A DNA stretch of 64,000 bases. Origin: Hyalangium minutum. Lineage in GTDB: Bacteria > Myxococcota > Myxococcia > Myxococcales > Myxococcaceae. Location of the stretch: NCBI RefSeq assembly GCF_000737315.1, contig NZ_JMCB01000009.1, forward strand, positions 62,001-126,000, in the 5' to 3' direction. This document shows, piece after piece, positions 31,774 to 49,215 of the stretch. The notes under the pieces are model-generated. The model saw only the letters and a program-made list of their open reading frames with translations. It did no database searches and had not been told where the DNA came from. Made by a program: the position numbers and the translations under genes. Position 1 is the stretch's first letter. Each line of letters opens with the position of its first letter.

Positions 31774-32541
31774 ATGGCTACAACCTTCTGCCCTCGCTGC
31801 GACACCGAGAACCCTGACGACGCCTCCATCTGCCAGAGCTGCGGCGCGCCCATGCGCTCCGGCACGCTGGTGATGGCGGTGTCTCAGATCGCCCCGCGCC
31901 CCCAGGTCTCCATCCGGGTGGTCCGCGCGGACGGTGGCCCCGAGTCCGTGGTCCGCATGAACCGCGACACGCTCGTGTGCGGCCAGACTCCCCAAGCGGA
32001 TCTGCGGCTGCCGGATGATCCCTTCGTGATGCCCGAGCAGGCGCGCTTCTTCTTCTCCGGCGTCCGGCTGGCGGTGGAGGACGTGGGAGGCGCCAACGGC
32101 GTCTTCGTCCGCCTGCGTCAGGAGCGCGAGCTGCCCACCGGCGGCGAGCTGCGGCTGGGGCGGCAGCGGCTGGTGCTCGAGCCCATCCCCGCGGCGACCG
32201 TGGGGCCGGGCGGCGCGCAGATCTGGGGCTCGCCGGATGCGGGCTACCGGCTGCGTCTGGTCCAGCTGCTCGAAGGCGGCATGCGCGGGGGCGCCTATCC
32301 GCTCAAGGAGGGGGACAACCTGTTGGGTCGTGAGCAAGGAGACATCACGTTCCCCACGGACGGCTTCGTCTCCGGGCGCCACGCCGTCCTCACGGTCCGC
32401 AAGGATCAGCTCACGGTGCGGGACGTCGGCTCGTCCAACGGCACGTTCATCCGCCTGACGGGCCCCACGTTCGTGGACAACGGCGACCACTTCCTCATGG
32501 GCCGCCAGCTGCTCCGCGTGGAGATCCAGGCGCTGGTCTGA
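31774..32541 (+). CDS. Double zinc ribbon + two FHA domains
   Basis: CPRC...CQSC; FHA1 degenerate (GQT...MPEQ), FHA2 canonical (GRE...SGRH...SSNGT). Confidence 0.85.
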   Translation: MATTFCPRCDTENPDDASICQSCGAPMRSGTLVMAVSQIAPRPQVSIRVVRADGGPESVVRMNRDTLVCGQTPQADLRLPDDPFVMPEQARFFFSGVRLAVEDVGGANGVFVRLRQERELPTGGELRLGRQRLVLEPIPAATVGPGGAQIWGSPDAGYRLRLVQLLEGGMRGGAYPLKEGDNLLGREQGDITFPTDGFVSGRHAVLTVRKDQLTVRDVGSSNGTFIRLTGPTFVDNGDHFLMGRQLLRVEIQALV

Positions 32542-33085: not shown

Positions 33086-33967
33086 ATGAGCGAAAGTTCG
33101 AAGTTCGACCGGGAGTTCTTGCGCTCGGCCCTCTCCTTGGCGAACCGGAATGAGGTGAGCCATTTCCTCTACATCTGCGACACCCCCATCGCCCCGGAGG
33201 ACCTGCGCGGGCGGCCGGCGCGCAAGAAGATCATCTACGCGGTGACGTCCGAGAAGATTGCGCACGAGTACATCCACCGCAAGCAGCAGGCGCTCGTCAT
33301 CCCCGCCTACGACTACTCGCGCACGGAGCGGGTGAAGGTGGCCCTCGTGTCAGCGCTCTCTCAGGGAGCAATCAAGGAGGGCGACCTGGTGCTGTGCATG
33401 ACGGGCAAGGTCGGCCGCCCTCCGGACACGCTGATGCAGACGCGGATCGGCGGCTCGCTGGATGACCGGGTGGCCATCGAAGGCGTGAAGCTGGGCGACG
33501 AGTTCAACTCGCAGGTGGTGGACGCGCTCATCCAGCTGGCGCTGCAGATCGGCCAGGAGGGCTTCGAGGGCCACCCCATCGGGACGATCCTCACGATCGG
33601 CGACCACACGAGCGTGCTGGAGAAGAGCCGGCAGCTGACCATCAACCCGTTCCAAGGCTTGTCCGAGGCCGAGCGCAACGTGCTGGATCCGAAGATCCGC
33701 GAGGCCATCAAGAACTTCTCGGTGCTGGACGGGGCGTTCGTGATCCGCGAGGACGGCGTGGTGCTGGCCGCAGGCCGCTACCTGTCCGCGGCGGACGAGG
33801 CGGTGAAGATTCCGCTGGGGCTCGGGGCGCGGCACGCAGCGGCGGCGGGGATCACCTCCACCACGCACAGCATCGCGCTGGTGGTGAGCCAGACCTCGGG
33901 TGCGGTGCGGCTCTTCAAGGGCGGCAACATCGTCCTGGAGCTGCACCAGACGGCGCGCCGCACGTAG
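33086..33967 (+). CDS. Diadenylate cyclase (DisA_N/DAC domain) with N-terminal pyruvate-kinase-C-like domain, DacZ type
   Basis: LDGAFVI and LGARHAAA DAC motifs; N-terminal RVKVALVSALSQGAIKEGDLVLCMTG resembles PK_C. Confidence 0.8.
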   Translation: MSESSKFDREFLRSALSLANRNEVSHFLYICDTPIAPEDLRGRPARKKIIYAVTSEKIAHEYIHRKQQALVIPAYDYSRTERVKVALVSALSQGAIKEGDLVLCMTGKVGRPPDTLMQTRIGGSLDDRVAIEGVKLGDEFNSQVVDALIQLALQIGQEGFEGHPIGTILTIGDHTSVLEKSRQLTINPFQGLSEAERNVLDPKIREAIKNFSVLDGAFVIREDGVVLAAGRYLSAADEAVKIPLGLGARHAAAAGITSTTHSIALVVSQTSGAVRLFKGGNIVLELHQTARRT

Positions 33968-34933: not shown

Positions 34934-35006
34934 GGGGAGCTCGGGGGAAGTGTGTGAGAGCTAAACCCATTGTCGTAAGAGGTAAGAAAGAGTTGCCAAG
35001 AATCTG

Positions 35007-35030
35007 AAAACCCTGTGGTTTCAGGGCTTT
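35007..35030 (-). terminator. Probable terminator after the PspA-like gene
   Basis: AAAGCCCTG-N6-CAGGGTTTT directly after the stop codon. Confidence 0.45.
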
Positions 35031-35592
35031 AGTCGGCCTTCTCCCCTGCCCCTCTCTCTTCTCGATAAATCTCCGCGAGCTGGTGGGCCCGCTCGATCTC
35101 GTCCCGGGCGGCGTCCACGGCGAGCACCTTCTCGATGCGCTCCACCTGCTCGCGCATGGCGCCGCTGACGAGACTTCCCGCCACGAGCCGGGCCGAGGCG
35201 CTCTGGCGCTCGGTGCGAAGCTCCGTCACCCGGGACCCCACTTCATTGGCGGCCTCCAGCAGCAGCTGGGAGTCCTTCTCCGCGCGCTCCAGGGCCTCCC
35301 GGGTGGACTTGAGCAGGGTCTCCGTCTGCTGCTGGTCCCGGTGCAGCACCTGCATGGCCTTGATGTCCGCACGGGACTCGGCCACCTGGTAGCGCTCGGC
35401 CAGCTCCGCCATCCGGCGCGTGTAGCGATCCACTGAGCGCGTCAGCTCGCCCTTGAGCGCCAGCAGCGTGGCCGCGGACTTGCGGACCTCGGCCCCCTGG
35501 CGCTCCAGATCCTCGATGAGCTGATCGAAGGCCGCCAGCGGATCGGCTGGCGTCTGTGCCTTCTTCTTCTTGCGAAAGAAGCCGAAGATCAT
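35029..35592 (-). CDS. PspA/IM30 (ESCRT-III-like) coiled-coil protein, 187 aa
   Basis: Amphipathic/basic N-terminus MIFGFFRKKKK, DP...DQLIEDLERQ...VRKSAATLLA pattern, all-helical; ATG 35592. Confidence 0.65.
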   Translation of the reverse strand: MIFGFFRKKKKAQTPADPLAAFDQLIEDLERQGAEVRKSAATLLALKGELTRSVDRYTRRMAELAERYQVAESRADIKAMQVLHRDQQQTETLLKSTREALERAEKDSQLLLEAANEVGSRVTELRTERQSASARLVAGSLVSGAMREQVERIEKVLAVDAARDEIERAHQLAEIYREERGAGEKAD

Positions 35593-35605
35593 GTCTGGCC
35601 CGAGC

Positions 35606-37900
35606 CTAGCTGAACGGACGGCACAGGAGGCGAACCCGCGCGAGGTTGTCCTGGACCGCCTTGTTCCCCGCGGCCAGCGCCGTGAGGTAGCGGGCCGGCG
35701 TGAGCTGGTAGACACCCAGCAAGTGCTGGAGCAGCACCACGCTCTCGGTGGGCCGGCGGTCCGCGGGAGCCAGCGAGGCGGCCTCGGCCAGGGCGTCCAG
35801 GATGTCCGCCACCCGCGCGAGCACGTCCTGCCCCACCGCCTCGCGGCTCTGAGCTTGGGACTGTTCGGGGAAGAGCGCATCAAAGGAGGCCTCGACCGCC
35901 ACCGGTGAAGTACCCGTACTGCGCTTGGAGGCCATGGACTCCAGGGCCTCCAGGTGCGGCCACAGCGCCTCGAGGTTCTCCGGCGAGTCGGGCGCCTCCG
36001 CAGGGAGCAGCGTGCGCCAGGGGGCGTCGAACTCGGTGCGCGCCCACTGGATCTCTTCGTCGGAGAGGTGGTGGTAGAAGGCGCGGCCACCCTGGGAGCG
36101 CTGCTCCTGCACCAGGGCGCGCAAGTCCATGTTCTCCTCGCCGAGCGAGATGAAGCTCAGCGCGATGGTGAGCGAGTCCACGGGAGCTCGGGTGCGGCGG
36201 ATGATCTCCATGTCCACCCGGTCCTCGCCATCGGTGACGAGCACCACGGTGGCGCGGGCCAGGTACGGATCCCTGCCCTGCGCGGTGCGGATGGAGTCGA
36301 ACGCGGACATCAGCGCCAGGGTGATGTCCGTCTGGCCCTCGGCGGGCGAGTGCCCGAAGAGCTTCTCGATCTGCCGGGTGGCCTCGGAGGCGGTGTCCAC
36401 GCGAGCCAGTTCCGTGGGCGAGTCATTGAAGAAGGAGAAGTACAGCGGATCGAAAGGCAGCCCCTGGCGGGCCTTGGCGCGCAGGTTGTTGAGCTCGGCG
36501 ATGAGCAGGGCGTCGCGGAACCGGGCGCGCGCGCCGTGCATGGAGCCCGAGGCATCCAGCACGTACACGCGCACGGCGGTCCGCTTGAGCTTCTTGGGCT
36601 TGGGCGGCGGCTCCTCCTCCATATACGCGCGCACGAGCTGCCGGTTGGCGGCCATGTCGTAGACGATCAGCCGAGGATCGGTGACGACGAAGTCATGCAC
36701 CTCGTGGAGATTGCCCGTCGTCTCGAAGCGCATCTTCTGCGTGGGGTACGGCACGCGCTTGGGGACAGACCGGATTGCCCCGGTGTCCACCTGGGCGATT
36801 TCCTCGGAGAGCGAGTCCTCCACGTCGAAGTAGCGGGCGCACCCGGCCGCCAGCTCGAAGGCCGCGAGCTGCTCCGGGTTGAGCGAGAAGGCCAGGTCCG
36901 CCAGCAGATCGTCCGCGCGGGACTTCTTCCCGGGCTTCTCCTGGAGGCCCTCTTCCACCTCTCCGTCCTGCAGGCGGGGCTTCTCGCCGAACCAGCGGGA
37001 CAGCTCCTGGCGCTCGGCCTGCTCCACGAAGGTCTTCATCTTGCTGGCCGAGGGCAGCATCGGCTCCAGCGCCGCACGCGCGGCCGAGGCCAGCTGCGCG
37101 TCCCCCGCCTCCACCGCCCGCTCATAGAGCCCCTTGAGCGAACGGTAGGCCTCTCCCGGCGAACGGCGGGCCGTGTGGCGCACCTGCTTCACCAGCTCCT
37201 CCAAGGAGCGCACGGCGGGGCTGGCTCGGATGCGCTCGCGGGCCTCGGCCACCTCCCGGCGCAACACCACGCCCCGGTCTCGATCGTGGTCCGCGCCCAG
37301 CCGCAGGAGCACCTCGTGGGCCAGATCCAGATCGCGCCGCTTCTGGAGCACGTCGTCCACGTTCTCCCTCGCCCGCTCGGCAAGGAACTCGGCAACGGCC
37401 ATGCGCGCACTGGCGGGCGCCCGTCCCTGCCACACATGGTTGCGGCGAGGGAGGATCTCGAACGGCGGCGGCTGGGCTCCCGGCGCGGAGGAGAACACAT
37501 CCGCCACCTTCACCACGCGCGCCAGCTGCACGAAGGCCCGCTCCAGCGCCGTCCGGGCTCCGGTGGGCATCTCCCCGGCCCGGCGCGCCCGCTCCACCTG
37601 GCGCATGCGGGTCTCGTACTCCTGCAGCGCCTCGGTGGCCCGGGCCGTCAGCGCCTCCGCGAGCTGCCCCGCCCTGCCCTTGCGAGCCCCGAGCGAGCGC
37701 AACAGGTGCGCGTCCGCCAGCGTGTGAACGCCGACCCGGTCCAGTTCCTTGTCGAGCGCCGCGATCGTGGGGAACGTGAGATCCACCTCGCCCGGCGCCA
37801 TCAGCCCGAGCGCCCAGCCCACCATGCCCGCGGGACGGGCGGTGCTCTGCTGGAGCGAGTCCAGCCGCAGGCGCAGCTCCGTGAGCTTGGGAGCGAGCAT
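35606..37900 (-). CDS. VWA domain protein (ViaA-like), 764 aa
   Basis: Intact MIDAS: DASGS, GQTD, VTDGED; long helical N-terminal region. Confidence 0.85.
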   Translation of the reverse strand: MLAPKLTELRLRLDSLQQSTARPAGMVGWALGLMAPGEVDLTFPTIAALDKELDRVGVHTLADAHLLRSLGARKGRAGQLAEALTARATEALQEYETRMRQVERARRAGEMPTGARTALERAFVQLARVVKVADVFSSAPGAQPPPFEILPRRNHVWQGRAPASARMAVAEFLAERARENVDDVLQKRRDLDLAHEVLLRLGADHDRDRGVVLRREVAEARERIRASPAVRSLEELVKQVRHTARRSPGEAYRSLKGLYERAVEAGDAQLASAARAALEPMLPSASKMKTFVEQAERQELSRWFGEKPRLQDGEVEEGLQEKPGKKSRADDLLADLAFSLNPEQLAAFELAAGCARYFDVEDSLSEEIAQVDTGAIRSVPKRVPYPTQKMRFETTGNLHEVHDFVVTDPRLIVYDMAANRQLVRAYMEEEPPPKPKKLKRTAVRVYVLDASGSMHGARARFRDALLIAELNNLRAKARQGLPFDPLYFSFFNDSPTELARVDTASEATRQIEKLFGHSPAEGQTDITLALMSAFDSIRTAQGRDPYLARATVVLVTDGEDRVDMEIIRRTRAPVDSLTIALSFISLGEENMDLRALVQEQRSQGGRAFYHHLSDEEIQWARTEFDAPWRTLLPAEAPDSPENLEALWPHLEALESMASKRSTGTSPVAVEASFDALFPEQSQAQSREAVGQDVLARVADILDALAEAASLAPADRRPTESVVLLQHLLGVYQLTPARYLTALAAGNKAVQDNLARVRLLCRPFS

Positions 37901-37958
37901 GCTCAGTCCCTCACCGGAGCCGCCTCACGCGGCGCGCTGCGCTGACAGGCTCGAGGAC

Positions 37959-40523
37959 TCACAGCGCCGACCGGACCTCCAGCACGCGCTTGCTGAAGCG
38001 CCCGAAGTCCTCATCAATCCCGCGCAGCTGGAACGAGAGCTTACGAGCGGACTCGCCCAGCTCACCCTGCATCGACCCGAGCGTGCCCAGCACGCCGCGG
38101 AGGCGCACCAGCTCGCCCTCCTTCAGCGCGAGCAACGGGAAGCGGCTCCGCACCAGCCGCTCGAAGGTGCGCTCTGCCTCCACCTTGCCCTTGGGAGCTT
38201 CGAGCTCCGGGAGCAGCACGGTGAGCAGCTGCGTCAACCAGCTCCGCAAGTACTTGATGCGCGTGTGGGCGAAGACCAGTTCGGCTTGCGCCACCGCCTG
38301 CCGGACGTTGTCCGAGAGGAACGAGGCCGCCTCCGAGGACCGCGCGAAGGACAGTTGGTTGTCCAGCCCCACCAATGCGGCCAGCTCTCCATCCGGTGCC
38401 CGGACGGAGAAGCTGTTGCGGTAGAACGAATAGGCGTCGCCGTTGACAACGGCACCGGGGGCTGGGGGCGGACTCGCCACCTCCCGTGCCAGCGTACGGG
38501 CGTGCTCGACCAGCCGCTGCTCCAGGGTGTCGCGGCACTGAGCGAGAACGGCCTCGGGAGGCACGCCCTCCTGCCGCAGGTTCTCCGCGACGGTCTGCAC
38601 GGCGCGCGCGTACTGCTCGATGCGCTCGAACGGCGTGGTGGAGAGCACCTGCTTCGCGTACGCCAGCCCGAGCGGCTGGAGCAGCTCCTGCTTGAGTCCG
38701 GGCTGCGTGGGATCCAGCTCCTGCAGCGATTTCTCCAACTGGGTGAGCCGCCGCGAGTCCGAGGAGAGCGCCTCGAACGGATCGCGCTTCCCCGGAGGCC
38801 GAGGCGCCTGGAACGCCGCCGCCGCCCGCCGCCTCAGCGAGGCGACCACGCGCCGGCGCACCGCCATGTCCTCCATCCGCAGCCGCTCCATGGCCGCCGC
38901 GGCGCCCTCGGCCAGCAGCCCCGACAGCGCGGACGCCTGGGAGATCTCCTCCTCCAGGTTGTCGGCCAGAGCCACGAGCCCTTCGATCTTGAGCCCGTCC
39001 TCGAACTCCACGCTCTCGGCCGACAGGGCGATCATCTCCAGCAGTGCCTCGAGCGTGCGCGCGGAGGCCTCACACAGCGGGCCAAAGTGCGTCCGCAGCT
39101 CAGGAACGGAGCGGCACAGCTCCAACGTATCCTTGAAGGCCGCCGTGAGCTGGAGCCCACCCCGCCCTTCCGGCGCCGCGCCTCCCACTCCAGCAGCCGC
39201 TCCATCCTGGGGCGTCATGCTGCGGGCCAGCCGCTGCTCCACCGCCGCGAGCAGCCCGCGCGCGGCCACCAGCAAGGGAGCACGGTTCTCCGTGTGCCGC
39301 GGGCCCGGCACGAGCTTCACCAGCAGCCGCTGGGCCGTGATGGAGGCCAAGGCAGGCTGGAACGTGCGCGCCAGGGCCTCGGCGGCGGACACATCCTCGG
39401 CGGCGGCCAGCGCGGAGGACTCGCGCTCCACGCCGGTGACGAGCTCGTTGCGCACCTTGACCAGCGTCTCGTCGAAGGTCTTCTGCTCCAGCCGGACGAT
39501 CTCCAGCTGCGCCCGCTCGCGCGGATCCACGGCGACTTTGAGGAGCGCCTCGGCCTCGGCCGCCTGCGGCCCTCCAAGCAGGAAGAACCAGCGGAGGGCG
39601 TCCAGATCCTCGATCGTCGCCTCCAGGGGCCGATCCGGGCGCTGGTAGATCTGATCGCGCACCACCGCGGCCTTGAGCGCCCACAGCGCCTTCACCACCG
39701 AGCGCTGGGAGAAGTACTTGGTGGGCACATAGTCCGGCAGCTTGGACACCTGGGCAGCCAGCGAGCGCTCCAGCCCATCCGCCAGCAACTCCACGCCCTC
39801 CAGCACCTGGCTGGAGACCTTCACCTTCTCCACGGACTCCTGGAGCACATCCAGTTGCTGCAGGGTGAGTGCGGCGCGAAGGTCCGGCCGTGAGCCGTGC
39901 ATGAAGCGGTGGAGCATGGCGGCGCGGCTGGCGCGGCGGGCGAACGACTTGGGCACGAAAGCGATGAAGCTGAGCCGGTCCGCGAAGGCCAGCAGCAGCT
40001 CCGGCGAGCGCGCCAGCACCTCCGAGAGGTACCGGTTGCTCGTCATGATGGCGCACTCGATGCGGCCGCTCGTCACCCGGCGGCCGTGCTTGAGCTCACG
40101 CTCGTGCAGCACGTTGAGGATGGAGCGCAGCAGCATGTCGCGCCCGTCGAACACCTCGTCGAGGAACGCATGCACGGCGCCCAGCATGCCGTCATCGGTG
40201 ATGTACTCGGTGCGGCCCGTCTCGGTGAGCACCTTGAAGTCCACCGGGCCAATGAGGTCCGTCTGCACCGTGGACTCGGCGATCTGCTTGGCGAAGAGGG
40301 ACGGGCTGCCCGTCTTCTCATCGGTGATGCGCCCCAGCACCGCACTGGCGATGGCGCTCTTGGCCGTACCCGGAGGCCCCACGACGAGCACATGCTCCCG
40401 GCACAGCAGCGCCAGCTCGATCTGGATGAAGAGCGTCTCACGCTCGAGGTACGTCTCGCGCAGCTCGCCGAAGAAGCGGCGGAAGGCCTGCGCGGCCTGA
40501 GGAAGGGTCGTCGGGTGGGTCAC
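37959..40523 (-). CDS. MoxR/RavA-subfamily AAA+ ATPase with a long helical C-terminal extension, 854 aa
   Basis: GPPGTAKS Walker A, AFLDEVF Walker B, SILNVLHER, TSN sensor, DRL Arg finger. Confidence 0.85.
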   Translation of the reverse strand: MTHPTTLPQAAQAFRRFFGELRETYLERETLFIQIELALLCREHVLVVGPPGTAKSAIASAVLGRITDEKTGSPSLFAKQIAESTVQTDLIGPVDFKVLTETGRTEYITDDGMLGAVHAFLDEVFDGRDMLLRSILNVLHERELKHGRRVTSGRIECAIMTSNRYLSEVLARSPELLLAFADRLSFIAFVPKSFARRASRAAMLHRFMHGSRPDLRAALTLQQLDVLQESVEKVKVSSQVLEGVELLADGLERSLAAQVSKLPDYVPTKYFSQRSVVKALWALKAAVVRDQIYQRPDRPLEATIEDLDALRWFFLLGGPQAAEAEALLKVAVDPRERAQLEIVRLEQKTFDETLVKVRNELVTGVERESSALAAAEDVSAAEALARTFQPALASITAQRLLVKLVPGPRHTENRAPLLVAARGLLAAVEQRLARSMTPQDGAAAGVGGAAPEGRGGLQLTAAFKDTLELCRSVPELRTHFGPLCEASARTLEALLEMIALSAESVEFEDGLKIEGLVALADNLEEEISQASALSGLLAEGAAAAMERLRMEDMAVRRRVVASLRRRAAAAFQAPRPPGKRDPFEALSSDSRRLTQLEKSLQELDPTQPGLKQELLQPLGLAYAKQVLSTTPFERIEQYARAVQTVAENLRQEGVPPEAVLAQCRDTLEQRLVEHARTLAREVASPPPAPGAVVNGDAYSFYRNSFSVRAPDGELAALVGLDNQLSFARSSEAASFLSDNVRQAVAQAELVFAHTRIKYLRSWLTQLLTVLLPELEAPKGKVEAERTFERLVRSRFPLLALKEGELVRLRGVLGTLGSMQGELGESARKLSFQLRGIDEDFGRFSKRVLEVRSAL

Positions 40524-40574
40524 GGGCAGCCAGGGCCAAACGGTAGGCCCGGCATGTTAGCCCCCACCCCTCGC

Positions 40575-40970
40575 CTATTTGAAGTGCACCGCACAGGCGC
40601 CATCTGGGCACTCGCGCCCAGCGATGCGGAAGCGGTACCGGGCTACCACGCCATAGAGGGCATCCACCAACTGCCGCAGCCCTGGCACGTAGTAGACGTA
40701 GAGCAGCCGGCCCCATAACCGCCGTCCCAGAGCCCGGACAATGGCCTCCGCGCCCTCGACGACGCGGCCATCCGCCTGGACCAGCTGCATGGCCTTCTCA
40801 CACCGCTCGTAAACAACCCCAGGGAACGCGCTGAGCGCGCCTTCATCCCGGAACGAGCGCAGCTCCGTTCCTCGTCCGCCCAACAGGCGCTCGAGCTTCC
40901 GAGCCCCTGCGCTGCACAGCCGGCAGTGCCCGTCGAACAGGATCACGTCATGACCCGGAGGCGAAGTCAT
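40575..40970 (-). CDS. DCC1-like (DUF393) thiol-disulfide oxidoreductase
   Basis: ILFDGHCRLC, GAEAIVRAL, YGVVARYRF motifs; ATG 40970 or 40979. Confidence 0.85.
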   Translation of the reverse strand: MTSPPGHDVILFDGHCRLCSAGARKLERLLGGRGTELRSFRDEGALSAFPGVVYERCEKAMQLVQADGRVVEGAEAIVRALGRRLWGRLLYVYYVPGLRQLVDALYGVVARYRFRIAGRECPDGACAVHFK

Positions 40971-41052
40971 CAACGCCATGCAGTGCCACCTCTCACTCTC
41001 AGTATGGCACCCCGCCTCTGACTTCTCATGCGAATCCCTGAGCCCAGGCCCG

Positions 41053-41093
41053 CAAAGAAGAAGGGCCGGTGTCCCGAGGGAGCACCAGCCCTT
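41053..41093 (-). terminator. Intrinsic terminator of dnaK
   Basis: GAAGGGCTGGTGC...CACCGGCCCTTC stem followed by TTCTTT. Confidence 0.7.
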
Positions 41094-41128
41094 CTCACTC
41101 ACTCAGCCGTGAAGGCCGCGCGTTCCGA

Positions 41129-43036
41129 TTACGACTGACGGAACTCGGCGTCCACCACGTCGTCCTTCGGCGTGGCCTGGCTGCCAGGAGCCGCGGACGG
41201 ACCACCAGCACCCGGAGGCGGCGGGCCACCGGCCGAGCCCGTGGCCTTGTACATCTCCTCCGCGATCTTGTAGCTGACCTGCTGCAGTTCGTTCAGCGCG
41301 GACTTGAGGAGCTCCTTGTCCTGGCCCTCGCGAGCCTTGTTCAGGTTGGCCAGGGTGCTCTCCAGCGCCGTGACGCTCTCGGCGGACAGCTTGTCCTTGT
41401 TCTCCTTCAGCATCTTCTCCGCGGCGTACGCCTGGCTCTCGGCCTGGTTCTTCAGCTCGACCAGCTCGCGGCGGGCCTTGTCGGCGGCCTCGTTCTCCCG
41501 CGCCTGCGCCACCATCTTCTCGACCTCGTCCTTGGCGAGACCCGAGGAGTGGGTGATCTGGACCTTCTGCTCCTTGCCCGTGGCCTTGTCCTTGGCGCTC
41601 ACGTTCAGGATGCCGTTGGCGTCGATGTCGAACGTCACCTCGATCTGAGGCACGCCGCGCGGCGCCGGAGGCATGCCCGTCAGGTGGAAGCGGCCCAGGC
41701 TGCGGTTGTCACCGGCCATGTCGCGCTCACCCTGCAGCACGTGGATCTCCACCTGCGTCTGGCCGTCGGCGGCCGTGGAGAACGTCTCCGACTTGCGCGT
41801 CGGGATCGTCGTGTTGCGCTCGATGAGCTTGGTCATCACTCCGCCCAGCGTCTCCACGCCGAGCGACAGCGGGGTGACGTCCAGCAGGAGGATGTCCTTC
41901 ACCTCGCCGGAGAGCACGCCGGCCTGCACCGCCGCACCGACGGCGACCACCTCGTCCGGGTTCACGCTCTCGTTCGGCTTCTTGCCGAAGAGGCGCTCCA
42001 CCGCGGCCTTCACCTTCGGGATGCGCGTGCTGCCGCCGACGAGCACCACCTCGTTCAGGTCCTTGGGCTCCACGCCCGCGTCCTTGAGGCACTTGCGGCA
42101 CGGCTCCAGCGAGCGCTCCACGAGCGCGTCGATCATCGACTCGAACTTGGCGCGCGACAGCTTCACGTTGAGGTGCTTGGGGCCGGACGCGTCCGCCGTG
42201 AGGAACGGGAGGTTGATCTCCGTCTCCATCGCGCTGGACAGCTCGATCTTGGCCTTCTCCGCCGCCTCCTTCAGGCGCTGGAGCACCATCTTGTCCTTGC
42301 TGATGTCGAGCCCGTTGTCCTTCTTGAACTCGCTGATCAGCCAGTTCATGATCTCCAGGTCGATGTTGTCGCCGCCCAGGTGCGTGTCACCGTTGGTCGC
42401 GAGCACATCCACCACGTTCTCGCCCACCTCCAGGATGGAGATGTCGAACGTGCCACCGCCGAAGTCATAGACGGCGATCTTCTCGTCCTTCTTCTTGTCC
42501 AGGCCGTACGCCAGAGCGGCGGCGGTCGGCTCGTTCACGATGCGGCGCACCGTGAGGCCCGCGATCTCACCGGCGTCCTTGGTGGCCTGGCGCTGAGCGT
42601 CGTTGAAGTACGCGGGAACGGTGATGACCGCCTCCGTCACCTTCTCACCCAGGTAGTTCTCCGCGGCGCGCTTCAGCTTGAGCAGCACCTGCGCCGAGAT
42701 CTCCGGCGGGCTGTACTGCTTGCCGTCAATTTCCACGCGCGCATCGCCGTGCGGTCCACGTACCACCTTGTACGGAACCAGCTTGGCCTCGTCGCCCGTC
42801 TCCTCGAAGCGGCGCCCCATGAAGCGCTTGATGGAGTAGACGGTGCGCTCCGGGTTGGTGATGGACTGCCGCTTGGCAACCTGGCCGACCAGACGCTCCC
42901 CATCCTTGGTGAACGCGACGACCGAGGGCGTGATGCGGCTGCCTTCCTCGTTGACGATGACCTTGGGCTCGCGACCCTCCATGATCGCCACCACGCTGTT
43001 GGTGGTGCCCAGGTCGATTCCAATGATCTTGCCCAC
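41129..43036 (-). CDS. dnaK: Chaperone DnaK (Hsp70)
   Basis: [40 protein letters not shown]; GTG 43036 with GGAGG RBS. Confidence 0.97.
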
Positions 43037-43091
43037 GGTTTCTATCCTCCGGAAACGACTGCGTTTTTCTACGAAACCCTGATGTACGCCC

Positions 43092-43119
43092 AACGTAACC
43101 ACCGAAGGGGGGGTGTCAA
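43092..43119 (-). promoter_or_regulatory. sigma70-like promoter of dnaK
   Basis: TTGACA-N16-TACGTT. Confidence 0.5.
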
Positions 43120-43460
43120 ACGGTCCCAAAGCCTCTGTGTCAACATGGGAGCCGCCCCAGCTGCGCACACAGGGGCCTCGGACAAGCGCTCGGCGTGAAG
43201 TCCAGGACACCGAGCGACCGGGCAGCCGCGTCACCTGTTCGCCACCGAACCGTCAAAGGTGCGTAACGGGCTCTACACCGCCGTCACCATCCGGTAGCGA
43301 TCACTCCCCTTCTGCCGGGGGCCTGAAGGGCCAAGCCCTTGAAATCACGTCCCCCCGCCAGAGCTAACGCCTCGCGTCAGCCGTTGGCGAGGAATGTGCA
43401 CAAGAAGGCAGCGGCGCTCGTATCGCGCACCGACAGTTCCTACCCAGGAGCCTGCCCCCC

Positions 43461-45816: not shown

Positions 45817-47136
45817 TCAGAGGAGGTTGGCGGCCAGCTCGGCCAGGGCGCTGCGCTCACCCTTGGCCATGGTGATGTGGCCGGCGATCTTCTCGTTCTT
45901 GAAGCGGTTGACCACGTGCACGAGGCCGTTGTTCGTCGCGTCCACGTAGGGGTTGTCGATCTGGAACGGATCCCCCGTGAGGACGATCTTCGTGTTGTCG
46001 CCCACGCGGGTGATGATGGTCTTCACCTCGTGGGGGGTGAGGTTCTGCGCCTCGTCCACTATGATGAACTGGTTGGGAATGCTGCGGCCGCGGATGTACG
46101 TCAGGGGCTCGATTTCGATCAGCCCCAGGTCCACGAGCTCGTGGTAGCCGCGGCCCGCCTTCTTGTCGGCCCGGCTGAGGTTCATCAGGAACTCCACGTT
46201 GTCGAAGATGGGCTGCATCCAGGGGTTCAGCTTCTCTTCCACACTGCCGGGCAGGTAGCCGATGTCCCGGCCGAGCGGGAAGATGGGCCGGCTCACCAGC
46301 AGCTTCTGGTACAGGCTCTCCTCGGTCACCTTGTGGAGCCCCGCGGCAATGGCCATCAGCGTCTTGCCCGTGCCGGCCTTGCCCACGATGGTGACGAGCT
46401 TGATGTCGTCGTTGAGCAGCAGGTCCAACACGAAGGCCTGCTCCATGTTGCGAGGCCGCACGCCCCAGATGCCCTCCTTGATGAGGCGCAGCAGGGGGAC
46501 GATCTTGCCCTTGGCCGCGTTGAAGCGGCCCATGGCGGTGTGCGAAGGGTTGGTCTCGTCCTTGAGAAGGATGCACTGGTTGGGGAAGAGCTTGTCCAAC
46601 CCCGCCACCTCGACTTCCGCGCCCGGCTTGTACATCTGGTCCACCGCGTCCCGAGGGACGAGCAACTCGGTGAAGCCGGTGTACAACTCGGTGATCTCGA
46701 CGCGCTCGGTGTCGTAGTCCTCGGCGACCAGCCCCAGCGCGTCGGCGCGGATGCGCAGGTTGGTGTCCTTGGTGATGAAGACGGCCTGGGTCTCCGGCTC
46801 CTTCTTCATCGTCTCGAGGGCCACCGCGAGGATGCGGTTGTCCATCAAGTCCTTGTCCGCCAGCTGCTGGGGGAGCTGCTCCTCGGCGAAGCTCACCTTC
46901 AGGAAGCCCCCGTGCGGCAGGGCCACCCCTTCCCTCAGCGAGCCCTCGGTGCGGAACGCGTCCAGGTAGCGGGTGACGAGGCGCGCGTTACGCCCCAGCT
47001 CGGACAGATCCCGCTTGAACTGATCGATCTCCTCGATCACGTAGATCGGGATGATGACGTTGTTGTCCTTGAAGGTGTAGATGCTGCGCGGATCGTGGAG
47101 GAGAACGTTGGTGTCGAGGATGAAGTTCTTCGGCAT
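45817..47136 (-). CDS. PhoH2: PIN domain + PhoH ATPase
   Basis: ILDTNVLLHDP (PIN), GKAGTGKT, YIRGRS, DEAQN, GDPFQID. Confidence 0.9.
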   Translation of the reverse strand: MPKNFILDTNVLLHDPRSIYTFKDNNVIIPIYVIEEIDQFKRDLSELGRNARLVTRYLDAFRTEGSLREGVALPHGGFLKVSFAEEQLPQQLADKDLMDNRILAVALETMKKEPETQAVFITKDTNLRIRADALGLVAEDYDTERVEITELYTGFTELLVPRDAVDQMYKPGAEVEVAGLDKLFPNQCILLKDETNPSHTAMGRFNAAKGKIVPLLRLIKEGIWGVRPRNMEQAFVLDLLLNDDIKLVTIVGKAGTGKTLMAIAAGLHKVTEESLYQKLLVSRPIFPLGRDIGYLPGSVEEKLNPWMQPIFDNVEFLMNLSRADKKAGRGYHELVDLGLIEIEPLTYIRGRSIPNQFIIVDEAQNLTPHEVKTIITRVGDNTKIVLTGDPFQIDNPYVDATNNGLVHVVNRFKNEKIAGHITMAKGERSALAELAANLL

Positions 47137-49058: not shown

Positions 49059-49131
<73 letters not shown>

Positions 49132-49136
49132 CAGAC

Positions 49137-49209
49137 GTCCCCGTCGTCTAGAGGCCCAGGACGCTGGCCTTTCAAGCCGGTAACACGGGTTCGAATCCCG
49201 TCGGGGACA
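49137..49209 (+). tRNA. tRNA-Glu (anticodon TTC)
   Basis: GTCCCCG/CGGGGAC acceptor stem, CTTTCAA loop, GTTCGAATC T-loop; CCA not encoded. Confidence 0.93.
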
Positions 49210-49215
49210 CATATC

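Follow-up and report, generated by a model that had tools for sequence, protein, structure and literature searches.

The MoxR ATPases characterised to date mature, to our knowledge, metalloenzyme or respiratory complexes and do not depolymerise filaments. In RavA, the P-loop is of the GPPGxAKS type. The NorQ/NorD pair engages its client via the VWA domain and surface carboxylates of the client, and this mode has been put forward as general among MoxR/VWA couples (PMC9976466). A GxxxTAKS variant of the P-loop has been noted in the MoxRs of FtsH- and beta-propeller-type ternary systems (Kaur et al. 2020, PMC7159879), and we found no mention of PspA in that paper (Kaur, Burroughs, Iyer, Aravind 2020, eLife). 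A 2025 review holds that a Vps4-like ATPase appears to be absent in bacteria and names PspF as an AAA+ partner of PspA; PspF is also a precedent for PspA directly binding an AAA+ protein. The Hsp70 proteins HSP70B / cpHsc70-1 are documented as ATP-driven disassembly chaperones of VIPP1 (PMC12798727 and related papers). The preliminary description of the present locus had stated that PspA and Vipp1 have no well-established Vps4-like recycling ATPase, which agrees with the review but has to be qualified by the documented role of Hsp70 in VIPP1 disassembly and by PspF as an AAA+ partner.

We analysed a window of 64,000 nucleotides from Hyalangium minutum (the whole stretch of DNA under study), in which genes for a MoxR-class AAA+ ATPase, a VWA protein and a PspA-like protein stand in a row. 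Our literature search found no paper describing this combination, and neither the PSP neighbourhood surveys nor the MoxR-vWA survey examined contain it, in agreement with the earlier description, whose author was aware of no characterised system of such a composition. The locus comprises the following features:

35004..35032, minus strand: modest hairpin with U-tract, overlapping and following the stop of the PspA-like gene (-12.1 kcal/mol, z = -1.69)
35029..35592, minus strand: divergent short PspA/IM30-like protein, 187 aa (PF04012 in orthologs, Foldseek)
35606..37900, minus strand: VWA-domain partner protein, 764 aa (sub-threshold matches to VWA_2 and VWA; MIDAS)
36542..36556, minus strand: MIDAS motif DxSxS, D449-A-S-G-S453, conserved in VWA orthologs
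37959..40523, minus strand: MoxR-class AAA+ ATPase, 854 aa, GTG start (matches to PF20030 and AAA_5)
40155..40169, minus strand: Walker B, AFLDE, residues 119-123, invariant across the family
40356..40379, minus strand: Walker A, GPPGTAKS, residues 49-56, a GxxxTAKS P-loop variant
40575..40979, or from an ATG at 40970, minus strand: DCC1-like thiol-disulfide oxidoreductase with CxxC (PF04134, 58.6 bits)
41045..41128, minus strand: intrinsic-terminator-like hairpin after dnaK (-47.2 kcal/mol, z = -4.55)
41129..43234, minus strand: dnaK (Hsp70), given as the longest possible ORF, with the Hsp70 domain starting at ORF residue 70 (PF00012, 873 bits)

The DCC1-like, AAA+, VWA and PspA-like genes are co-oriented, with successive intergenic gaps of 51, 58 and 13 nt, and the GC content of the group is the same as that of the DNA around it. 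The preliminary description had the positions, sizes, gaps (about 50, 58 and 13 nt) and domain composition of these four genes right, and the Walker A/B motifs and MIDAS that it called intact are conserved, the former invariant in the family and the latter present in all 83 orthologs examined. Both of its hairpins are real, though of different strength. The dnaK hairpin is a strong one (0/200 shuffles fold as well) followed by the U-rich tail UUCUUCUUUG, and it parts dnaK from the four downstream genes, whereas the hairpin at the PspA-like stop is modest (12/200 shuffles fold as well; tail UUUUCAGAUUCUU).

We observe that the AAA+, VWA and PspA-like genes are collinear in all 74 related genome loci with sufficient DNA (AAA+ identity 53-90%), the VWA and PspA-like genes being separated by a median of about 20 nt. 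Identities of the three proteins, taken pairwise, correlate (r = 0.95-0.96), indicating vertical co-inheritance as a unit. M. xanthus has orthologs of proteins of the trio, ABF85875.1 and ABF87135.1. Two more distant metagenome loci keep the order as well: L091, with an AAA+ identity of 47% and a PspA-like match at E = 3e-40, and L087, with an AAA+ identity of 40% and a shortened PspA-like protein. In L046, L048, L062 and L064, where an extra gene is inserted, the PspA-like gene still lies downstream. The linkage reported earlier extends through a whole clade of Myxococcota at family level and reaches at least two lineages that branch deeper. Each genome scanned has one matching locus, with stable chromosomal synteny and co-divergence with the host lineage. 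This arrangement is no product of chance, and these three genes form the core unit.

The DCC1-like gene shares the orientation of the AAA+ gene, from which it lies 51 nt upstream, and had been listed earlier together with the other three. Where a locus offers 5 kb or more of upstream DNA, the DCC1-like gene is found in 29 of 59 cases, and in all 29 the AAA+ identity is at least 69%. Similarly, dnaK lies upstream in 39/59 loci and is missing from more distant ones, and its identity of 82-95% across loci would fit a housekeeping gene. The flanks vary by clade, with dnaK/DCC1 in one and an Rce1-like gene in another. DCC1 and dnaK are thus lineage-specific neighbours outside the core unit. Furthermore, no PspA-like gene adjoins the AAA+/VWA pair in any of six further contexts examined, namely Labilithrix, Pendulispora and Polyangium (Polyangia) and three metagenome contexts. 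The pair is older than the trio, and its occurrence alone indicates that it has, or had, a PspA-independent role and that the ATPase is not intrinsically dedicated to PspA, contrary to the earlier wording.

The AAA+ module of the ATPase (bpMoxR/RavA-like) occupies the N-terminal ~190 aa, and its GTG start agrees with the N-termini of orthologs. It matches PF20030 bpMoxR with 74.5 bits (cut-off 27) and AAA_5 with 41.9 bits. The Walker A motif is invariant across the family (alignments A2 and A3), as are F120, L121, D122 and E123 of Walker B in 46 sequences spanning Myxococcaceae and Polyangia. RavA is the sole solved relative found by sequence (E = 6e-9, residues 18-255), and the score against the RavA equivalog is 40 bits, with a cut-off of 681. 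By these profile scores the ATPase is placed in the bpMoxR/RavA-like clade and is not a RavA ortholog, so that the preliminary RavA assignment is replaced by a bpMoxR type; RavA was rejected as its family and is its nearest solved structure only. Residues ~190-854 form an all-alpha extension (~600 aa) to which no family could be assigned. In the AF2 model (pLDDT 82.5), residues 190-854 are helical and mostly >90, and Foldseek matched the N-terminus to RavA and to a MoxR-like protein, the remainder to nothing but generic helical repeats.

In every related locus with sufficient DNA the VWA gene comes next after the AAA+ gene; at locus L002, for example, the ortholog at the corresponding position is 55% identical. 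The VWA domain spans residues ~445-600 and scores slightly below cut-off against both VWA_2 (24.7 bits) and VWA (22.8 bits), while the N-terminal ~440 aa and the C-terminal ~165 aa flanking it have no assigned family. A sequence search of structures found no solved relative. The DxSxS motif is kept in 83/83 orthologs, Polyangia included, in which EGQTD and [LI][VI]TDG (VTDG in the window protein) are conserved as well.

The N-terminus of the PspA-like protein, MIFGFFRKKKK, is short, hydrophobic and polybasic. Helix 1 opens with a DP motif, the helical hairpin covers residues 18-73 and 77-~135, and the C-terminal helix (AVDAARDEIERAHQLAEIYREE) is conserved. Conservation is highest at the open end of the hairpin and in the C-terminal helix, where invariant acidic residues are plentiful, and a natural 151-aa variant that has no hairpin tip keeps both parts. 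The PspA/IM30 family match claimed earlier holds for 19 of 36 orthologs (PF04012, best 1.9e-7), but the window protein itself stays below threshold (13.8 bits, E = 0.044, cut-off 33.9; E = 0.0016 against TIGR02977). Among the 36 orthologs no family but PF04012 comes up repeatedly; other coiled-coil families appear once each. Foldseek of the AF2 model (pLDDT 86.5) against the PDB supports a PspA/ESCRT-III fold, with the best 13 matches all being PspA or Vipp1, ahead of other hairpins, and the top one being 4whe, the PspA(1-144) fragment (E = 9.7e-4, TMt 0.74). Profile alignments with E. coli PspA and with chains of Vipp1 and cyanobacterial PspA share one register from the DP motif; hhalign against E. 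coli PspA gives a probability of 16-22%, for helix 1 alone, with controls against helical AAA+ and VWA proteins at E ~0.4, and in a PDB sequence search keratin and other coiled coils score alike. The N-termini, such as MGLFSFL in the L048 ortholog, are similar to the beginning of helix 0 in PspA/Vipp1. Taken together, homology and model support a divergent, shortened PspA/IM30 relative with a probable PspA/ESCRT-III-type fold. The protein has ~35 residues fewer than E. coli PspA, its helix 0 is truncated and no equivalent could be assigned to helix 5, which canonical PspA/Vipp1 use in polymer contacts; canonical polymerisation is therefore uncertain.

We tentatively favour the reading in which the trio constitutes one cytoplasmic, membrane-proximal machine. 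The MoxR-class protein would be the ring ATPase, the VWA protein its adaptor, as in NorQ/NorD and RavA/ViaA, and the PspA/IM30-like protein the dedicated partner that these two act upon, likely anchored at the membrane by its short hydrophobic, polybasic N-terminus. The MIDAS site of the VWA protein may bind a conserved carboxylate of the PspA-like protein, with the invariant D17, D23, D164, E165, E167 and E178 as candidates, and ATP hydrolysis would then alter the assembly state of the latter at the inner membrane, either by releasing or disassembling oligomers or by loading the protein onto the membrane. The strict linkage and co-divergence, the invariant motifs, the supported fold, the conserved acidic regions and the PspF precedent speak for this reading. 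The AAA+/VWA pairs that stand without a PspA-like neighbour, the maturation roles of characterised MoxR ATPases, the uncertain canonical polymerisation and the sub-threshold PF04012 score speak against it. That the proteins interact physically, which of them acts on which, and that the PspA-like protein forms polymers and binds the membrane are parts of this scheme that we only infer. An analogue of Vps4 is a plausible reading by comparison. Bacterial PspA proteins were thought to have no partner driven by energy, and gene order and fold predictions make the trio a candidate for one.

The logic could also be reversed, as for PspA and PspF, a somewhat unlikely case in our judgement, with the PspA-like protein as a membrane-stress sensor or membrane tether that would bind and gate a MoxR/VWA chaperone acting on some other complex, probably an envelope or respiratory one. 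The Myxococcaceae lineage would then have joined a PspA-like subunit to an older two-gene chaperone, and since the AAA+/VWA pair stands alone in Polyangia and other contexts, the PspA-like protein does look like a lineage-specific add-on. The long lineage-specific helical extensions of the AAA+ and VWA proteins could hold another client, but no candidate client gene is conserved beside the trio, where the flanks vary by clade. PspA of Proteobacteria binds the AAA+ protein PspF, and the closest solved structure to the PspA-like protein is the PspA(1-144) fragment; the AAA+ protein here has no sigma-54 or DNA-binding module, however, and the PspF analogy is therefore only partial.

It is unlikely that the small protein is no functional PspA/ESCRT-III relative but just a generic coiled coil within a MoxR/VWA complex, its PspA likeness reflecting hairpin geometry and composition. 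Its PF04012 score, the hhalign probability limited to helix 1, the similar scores of keratin, the truncated helix 0 and the unassignable helix 5 are all consistent with this, but PF04012 alone recurs among orthologs, PspA and Vipp1 outrank other hairpins in Foldseek, all profile alignments keep one register, the hhalign controls stand at E ~0.4 and MGLFSFL-like N-termini resemble the start of helix 0. Very improbable, finally, is an anti-invader MoxR-vWA ternary conflict system with the PspA-like protein as effector or membrane-protecting third component. PF20030 was built from MoxR-vWA-beta-propeller ternary systems, the P-loop is the GxxxTAKS variant noted for them, and such systems show enrichment in multicellular bacteria, deltaproteobacteria among them (PMC7159879). 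Against this, we found no VMAP, iSTAND, FtsH or beta-propeller component, no effector domain and no meaningful PADLOC match at the locus, and the stable synteny, single locus per genome scanned and host co-divergence contrast with a patchy mobile distribution. The GC content equals that of the neighbouring DNA.

The locus resembles several known systems in part. It shares with the MoxR-vWA ternary conflict systems (PMC7159879) a MoxR and vWA core with a distinct third component, and its ATPase falls in PF20030, the family defined from them, but the third component lies outside VMAP, iSTAND, FtsH and beta-propeller types and the trio has neither effector domains nor signs of mobility or variability. 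PspF-PspA likewise couples an AAA+ ATPase genetically to a protein of the PspA family. PspF, however, belongs to the sigma-54 enhancer-binding AAA+ proteins and carries a DNA-binding domain, and its gene is transcribed divergently from pspA, whereas the ATPase here is of the MoxR class and comes with a VWA partner, the genes running in one direction at gaps of 13-58 nt; neither PspB nor PspC was found here. In Hsp70-VIPP1, an ATP-driven chaperone governs how a PspA-family protein assembles, and dnaK is the upstream neighbour here and in 39/59 related loci, but dnaK is parted from the trio by the strong terminator and missing from more distant loci.

An ESCRT-III-superfamily gene beside an AAA+ gene is the pattern that defines archaeal ESCRT loci (Vps4/CdvC-ESCRT-III). 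Vps4, which threads the tails of ESCRT-III, is an AAA+ of the classical clade and bears a MIT domain at its N-terminus, whereas the ATPase here is MoxR-class, a VWA adaptor intervenes and Pfam and Foldseek detected no MIT-like module. MoxR ATPases do not belong to the Vps4 type of threading unfoldases. The relation could at most be a functional analogy, not homology. As in RavA-ViaA of E. coli, a MoxR-class AAA+ with a P-loop of the GPPGxAKS type adjoins a VWA protein with MIDAS. However, the ATPase has a 600-aa all-helical extension and no detected LARA domain, the VWA protein matches no ViaA/CoxE-type VWA model, and the literature searched reports no PspA-like third gene for RavA-ViaA. The locus also shares with NorQ/NorD and CbbQ/CbbO-type chaperones an AAA+ ring with a single large VWA adaptor, its ATPase being about three times the length of the short NorQ/CbbQ-type MoxRs. 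The clients of those chaperones are metalloenzymes encoded nearby, whereas here the sole conserved third gene encodes a PspA-like helical-hairpin protein.

We found that the four minus-strand genes lie where the preliminary description had placed them, with the same sizes and order, and that the gaps from the DCC1-like gene through the AAA+ and VWA genes to the PspA-like gene measure 51, 58 and 13 nt. The last three of these genes, termed the trio here, stand in a window with a G+C content of ~68% whose composition is unbroken across the locus:

dnaK, 41129-43234, minus strand, upstream of the DCC1-like gene (PF00012, 873 bits)
DCC1-like gene, 40575..40979, minus strand, with an alternative ATG at 40970 (Pfam PF04134, 58.6 bits)
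AAA+ gene, 37959..40523, minus strand, 854 aa, with a GTG start backed by conserved ortholog N-termini
VWA gene, 35606..37900, minus strand, 764 aa
PspA-like gene, 35029..35592, minus strand, 187 aa

Both hairpins described as flanking these genes are present, and the terminator-like one at the dnaK end is strong (-47.2 kcal/mol, z = -4.55), whereas the one past the PspA-like stop codon is modest (-12.1 kcal/mol, z = -1.69). Other genes near the trio in the window are the following, none of which is kept beside it in other lineages:

Zinc-ribbon plus FHA protein gene, 31774-32541, plus strand
Diadenylate cyclase gene (DAC domain, DacZ-type sensor region), 33086-33967, plus strand
PIN-PhoH fusion gene, 45817-47136, minus strand
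tRNA-Lys(UUU)/tRNA-Glu(UUC) pair, 49059-49210, plus strand

Across genomes, the scan of one genome per species returned 249 AAA+ relatives, with gene order counted in the best 80 of these 249 loci and the low-identity tail sampled by 12 contigs. The best 80 all belong to Myxococcaceae or Archangiaceae-type organisms or to Myxococcota MAGs, with AAA+ identities of 53-90%, and the AAA+, VWA and PspA-like genes were collinear and co-oriented in 74/74 loci extending far enough (tblastn with the window proteins), the remaining 6 stopping at a contig edge. The VWA gene directly follows the AAA+ gene in 79/79 genome loci with DNA past the latter, the VWA-to-PspA-like gap has a median of ~20 nt, and the identities of the trio proteins correlate across loci (r = 0.95-0.96). 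In 4 loci this gap spans 750-1,800 nt, with the PspA-like gene still downstream in 4/4. The linkage proposed from the window alone is also kept in two deeper lineages, L091 (AAA+ 47% identical, PspA-like match E = 3e-40) and L087 (AAA+ 40% identical, third gene a 151-aa PspA-like variant), and in the material examined the trio is confined to a single major lineage of myxobacteria. Two of the four wide VWA-to-PspA-like gaps were read, and each is occupied by a lineage-specific insertion, namely a gene for a 414-aa secreted trypsin-like serine protease (L048:10964-12208) and an ORF of 249 aa that begins with a hydrophobic segment at its N-terminus (L062:10788-11537).

The upstream genes are conserved to a lesser extent. 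Despite its PF04134 match, the DCC1-like gene does not belong to the conserved system, being found in 29/59 loci with enough upstream DNA and in the closer clade only, while dnaK lies upstream in 39/59 such loci, in subclades only. We also observe dnaK immediately upstream of the locus in some distant loci (L043, L047, L053, L054), and its product is 82-95% identical across loci (L003-L082). In 3/3 deeper-branching loci lacking dnaK and the DCC1 gene whose gene tables were read, a divergently oriented gene for an Rce1-like (CPBP-type) membrane protease stands immediately upstream of the AAA+ gene (L001:3049-4155, L002:5811-6911, L091:44-1153).

Judged by its sequence, the 854-aa protein is a MoxR-class AAA+ ATPase. 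PF20030 (bpMoxR) is its best family (74.5 bits, cut-off 27), AAA_5 also matches (41.9 bits, cut-off 22), and PF20030 is found on all 240 AAA+ homologs listed by two homolog searches. The Walker A motif GPPGTAKS and the Walker B motif FLDE, previously called intact, are invariant among 46 family members. Among solved structures, sequence search links it to RavA alone (E = 6e-9, residues 18-255), and the label RavA-like holds for the ATPase module but not for orthology: where 681 bits are required, the RavA equivalog NF010054 gives 40.1, its match being confined to residues 15-253, and Foldseek with the AF2 model returned no RavA-like (triple-helix/LARA) match to the all-alpha C-terminal 600 aa. 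RavA orthology was ruled out on these two grounds, the score far under the cut-off and the absent RavA C-terminal domains, and the label therefore names the module. The long helical extension of the preliminary description is borne out by the AF2 model (46 sequences, pLDDT 82.5), in which residues ~190-854 are predicted with high confidence to be all alpha-helical. RavA and a MoxR-like protein match the N-terminus of this model in Foldseek, while nothing specific was returned for the extension, merely generic helical-repeat or designed proteins at TM below 0.2, for which reason a fold assignment of the extension was dropped. We also observe that residues 78-178, from Walker A to sensor 1, have a pLDDT of 33-57 although they are the best-conserved part of the alignment, whereas the poorly conserved helical extension is above 90; this may stem from the alignment being shallow, or from the region depending on nucleotide or on oligomer formation.

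In the VWA protein, the generic VWA_2 and VWA models match just under their cut-offs, the ViaA/CoxE-type VWA model and all other families give no match at E up to 1, and no solved relative was found by sequence. The MIDAS motif DxSxS, reported as intact in the window, is kept in 83/83 orthologs.

Upon examining the wider AAA+ family, which is large (211 clusters at 50% identity with E ≤ 1e-30 in an exhaustive profile search), we find a second tier in Polyangia, including Labilithrix, Pendulispora and Polyangium; its members are 52-55% identical along the initial ~360 residues, with a diverged C-terminus and equal overall length. A large partner (720-1130 aa) directly follows the AAA+ gene in these three named genomes and in three metagenome contexts, and scanning this partner in the three Polyangia showed a VWA domain whose MIDAS is intact. 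A PspA-like gene adjoins the pair in 0/6 of these contexts, and thus the ancient core is the AAA+/VWA pair, to which the Myxococcaceae-level lineage has fixed the PspA-like gene as a third component. In Polyangia, small genes beside the pair (167-aa L084, 252-aa L085 and 105-aa L086 products) were considered as hidden PspA-like genes and rejected, family similarity being absent: hhalign to the PspA-like family gave E ~0.6-0.7 for the L084 and L085 products, tblastn found nothing for any of the three, and the N-termini of all three are hydrophobic and signal-peptide-like. Directly downstream of the pair, Polyangium jinanense (L085:12305-16649) carries VgrG-like (Phage_GPD) and DUF2169/pentapeptide-repeat genes, which are type VI secretion-associated families, and in the metagenome context of P0277 the pair is followed by genes for a KaiC-like double ATPase and for a hybrid histidine kinase, a lineage-specific association.

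Next, we consider whether the 187-aa protein is a PspA/IM30 relative. The window sequence lies below the cut-offs of both family models (PF04012, 13.8 bits, E = 0.044, cut-off 33.9; TIGR02977, 18.2 bits, E = 0.0016, cut-off 243), so that the earlier assignment is upheld by the predicted fold and by the orthologs, but not by this sequence on its own. PF04012 matches 19/36 orthologs at E up to 0.01 (best 1.9e-7) and is the sole recurrent family in that scan; several orthologs are named 'PspA/IM30 family protein' by NCBI. The AF2 model (pLDDT 86.5) has helices at 18-73 and 77-181, with a dip in confidence at ~131-150, and its first 13 matches in the PDB by Foldseek are all PspA or Vipp1, including E. 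coli PspA(1-144) (4whe; E = 9.7e-4, TMt 0.74, rmsd 2.7 Å). The helical hairpin and further helices of the model superpose on solved PspA/Vipp1, and a single register, set from a conserved DP motif, recurs in all profile alignments with E. coli PspA and the Vipp1/cyanobacterial PspA chains. The more diverse profile of the family brought no gain against PspA (hhalign E = 1.5e-3; PDB hmmsearch E = 0.22 for 4whe). In a control hhalign of the family against the helical AAA+ and VWA proteins, E was ~0.4, and no PspA-like repeats were found inside their helical extensions. The ortholog matches, model, Foldseek ranking and shared register together favour a divergent PspA/IM30 relative, and we regard the protein as most probably a true PspA homolog.

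It is, furthermore, an atypical relative: E. coli PspA, at 222 aa in the hhalign output, exceeds it by ~35 residues, and no equivalent of helix 5 is assignable. Where PspA/IM30 proteins would have the amphipathic, membrane-binding helix 0, its N-terminus places only ~16 residues before the DP motif, with a conserved hydrophobic and polybasic MxFGFF(K/R)KKK that has low model confidence. The invariant positions (D17, P18, D23, R37, A41, L43, L44, L125, E128, A162, R163, D164, E165, E167, L172 and E178) group in two places, the hairpin's open end and the C-terminal helix, and the hairpin tip is variable. This tip is naturally deleted in the 151-aa variant (L087:5511-5966; hhalign probability 95.7%), which lacks ~40 residues there but still has DP..FD near the N-terminus and the helix LDAARDE..LY.E at the C-terminus, marking the retained parts as functionally constrained.

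An intact MoxR ATPase, a MIDAS-intact VWA protein, a PspA-fold protein and an operon-like linkage with co-divergence make it very likely that the three proteins form one physical module. The working of this module was modelled on established MoxR/VWA couples such as NorQ/NorD, in which the pore of a hexameric ring is plugged by the single VWA protein bound to it (PMC9976466). By this analogy, the VWA MIDAS site would capture an invariant carboxylate of the PspA-like protein, and the ATPase would then change the assembly or membrane-bound state of that protein; we tentatively prefer this reading as the best available. The main rival, which we consider somewhat less likely, is that the PspA-like protein gates or tethers the chaperone while the true client lies elsewhere; it fits the independent existence of the AAA+/VWA pair in Polyangia, and the binding of PspA to the AAA+ protein PspF is a precedent for gating. 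That the PspA-like protein is a generic coiled-coil subunit seems improbable. A conflict system like those of Kaur et al. is very improbable indeed, because none of its four defining third components (VMAP, iSTAND, FtsH or beta-propeller) or effector domains was detected in the three proteins or their flanks, PADLOC is silent and inheritance is vertical; a defence system was likewise rejected, the PADLOC output being noise only (mad8 E = 4e-4, BilC E = 0.0095).

PspA and Vipp1 form the ESCRT-III superfamily's bacterial branch, and a 2025 review agrees with the premise of the preliminary description in that a Vps4-like ATPase for PspA/Vipp1 polymer dynamics seems to be missing from bacteria (PMC7619361), whereas Hsp70 is already documented in the control of VIPP1 oligomer disassembly (PMC12798727). 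Given this role of Hsp70 and the proportion of loci in which dnaK adjoins the trio, their adjacency might be more than synteny, though a strong terminator separates them. The further proposal, that the AAA+ and VWA proteins are a non-homologous bacterial counterpart of Vps4, is a reasonable hypothesis whose whole basis is gene order and fold prediction, and we hold it to be doubtful in its full form, namely a dedicated ATP-driven machine that would assemble, recycle or disassemble a putative PspA-type polymer at the myxobacterial inner membrane, with the VWA MIDAS replacing the MIT domain as recognition module.

In this strictly conserved, tightly spaced trio, a PspA-family protein is coupled with a chaperone pair of AAA+ and VWA proteins. 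Were the pair to act on the PspA-like protein, evolution would have arrived independently at a way to energise an ESCRT-III-type protein, and a MoxR/VWA couple would have its first non-metalloenzyme, membrane-remodelling client; were the PspA-like protein instead to gate the ATPase, the PspA-PspF logic would extend to another AAA+ clade. Either way, functional context would be gained for three families labelled 'AAA family ATPase' or 'hypothetical protein'. Myxococcus xanthus is genetically tractable and carries the trio, so the question is directly testable. In agreement with the earlier view that no system of this composition had been characterised, full-text literature on the combination and on the M. 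xanthus AAA+ (ABF87135.1) and PspA-like (ABF85875.1) proteins yielded nothing. MoxR and vWA partners go unmentioned in two surveys of PSP neighbourhoods (PMC11237479, PMC9239133), Ravi et al. reporting there different AAA+ associations, one with a two-AAA+-domain protein and one with a coiled-coil/beta-propeller AAA+, and the MoxR-vWA survey of Kaur et al. 2020 does not mention PspA (PMC7159879).

When compared with known systems, the trio is not a member of RavA/ViaA, as it matches neither the RavA equivalog nor the ViaA/CoxE-type VWA model. Vps4 is a classical-clade AAA+ with a MIT domain for ESCRT-III C-terminal motifs, whereas the AAA+ protein here is MoxR-class and not homologous, with no family match to MIT or Vps4. 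The ternary classes of Kaur et al. 2020 are defined by a third component, mostly accompanied by effector domains, that is VMAP, iSTAND, a beta-propeller or a protein with two FtsH domains, and none of the four was detected in the trio. Overall, the initial observation is confirmed and its interpretation stands in part, as regards the conserved trio and the PspA fold. The trio belongs to the MoxR/VWA family at the level of its AAA+/VWA pair, and we take it to be a genuine and conserved form of MoxR/VWA system, apparently not described before, whose third component is of the PspA family.
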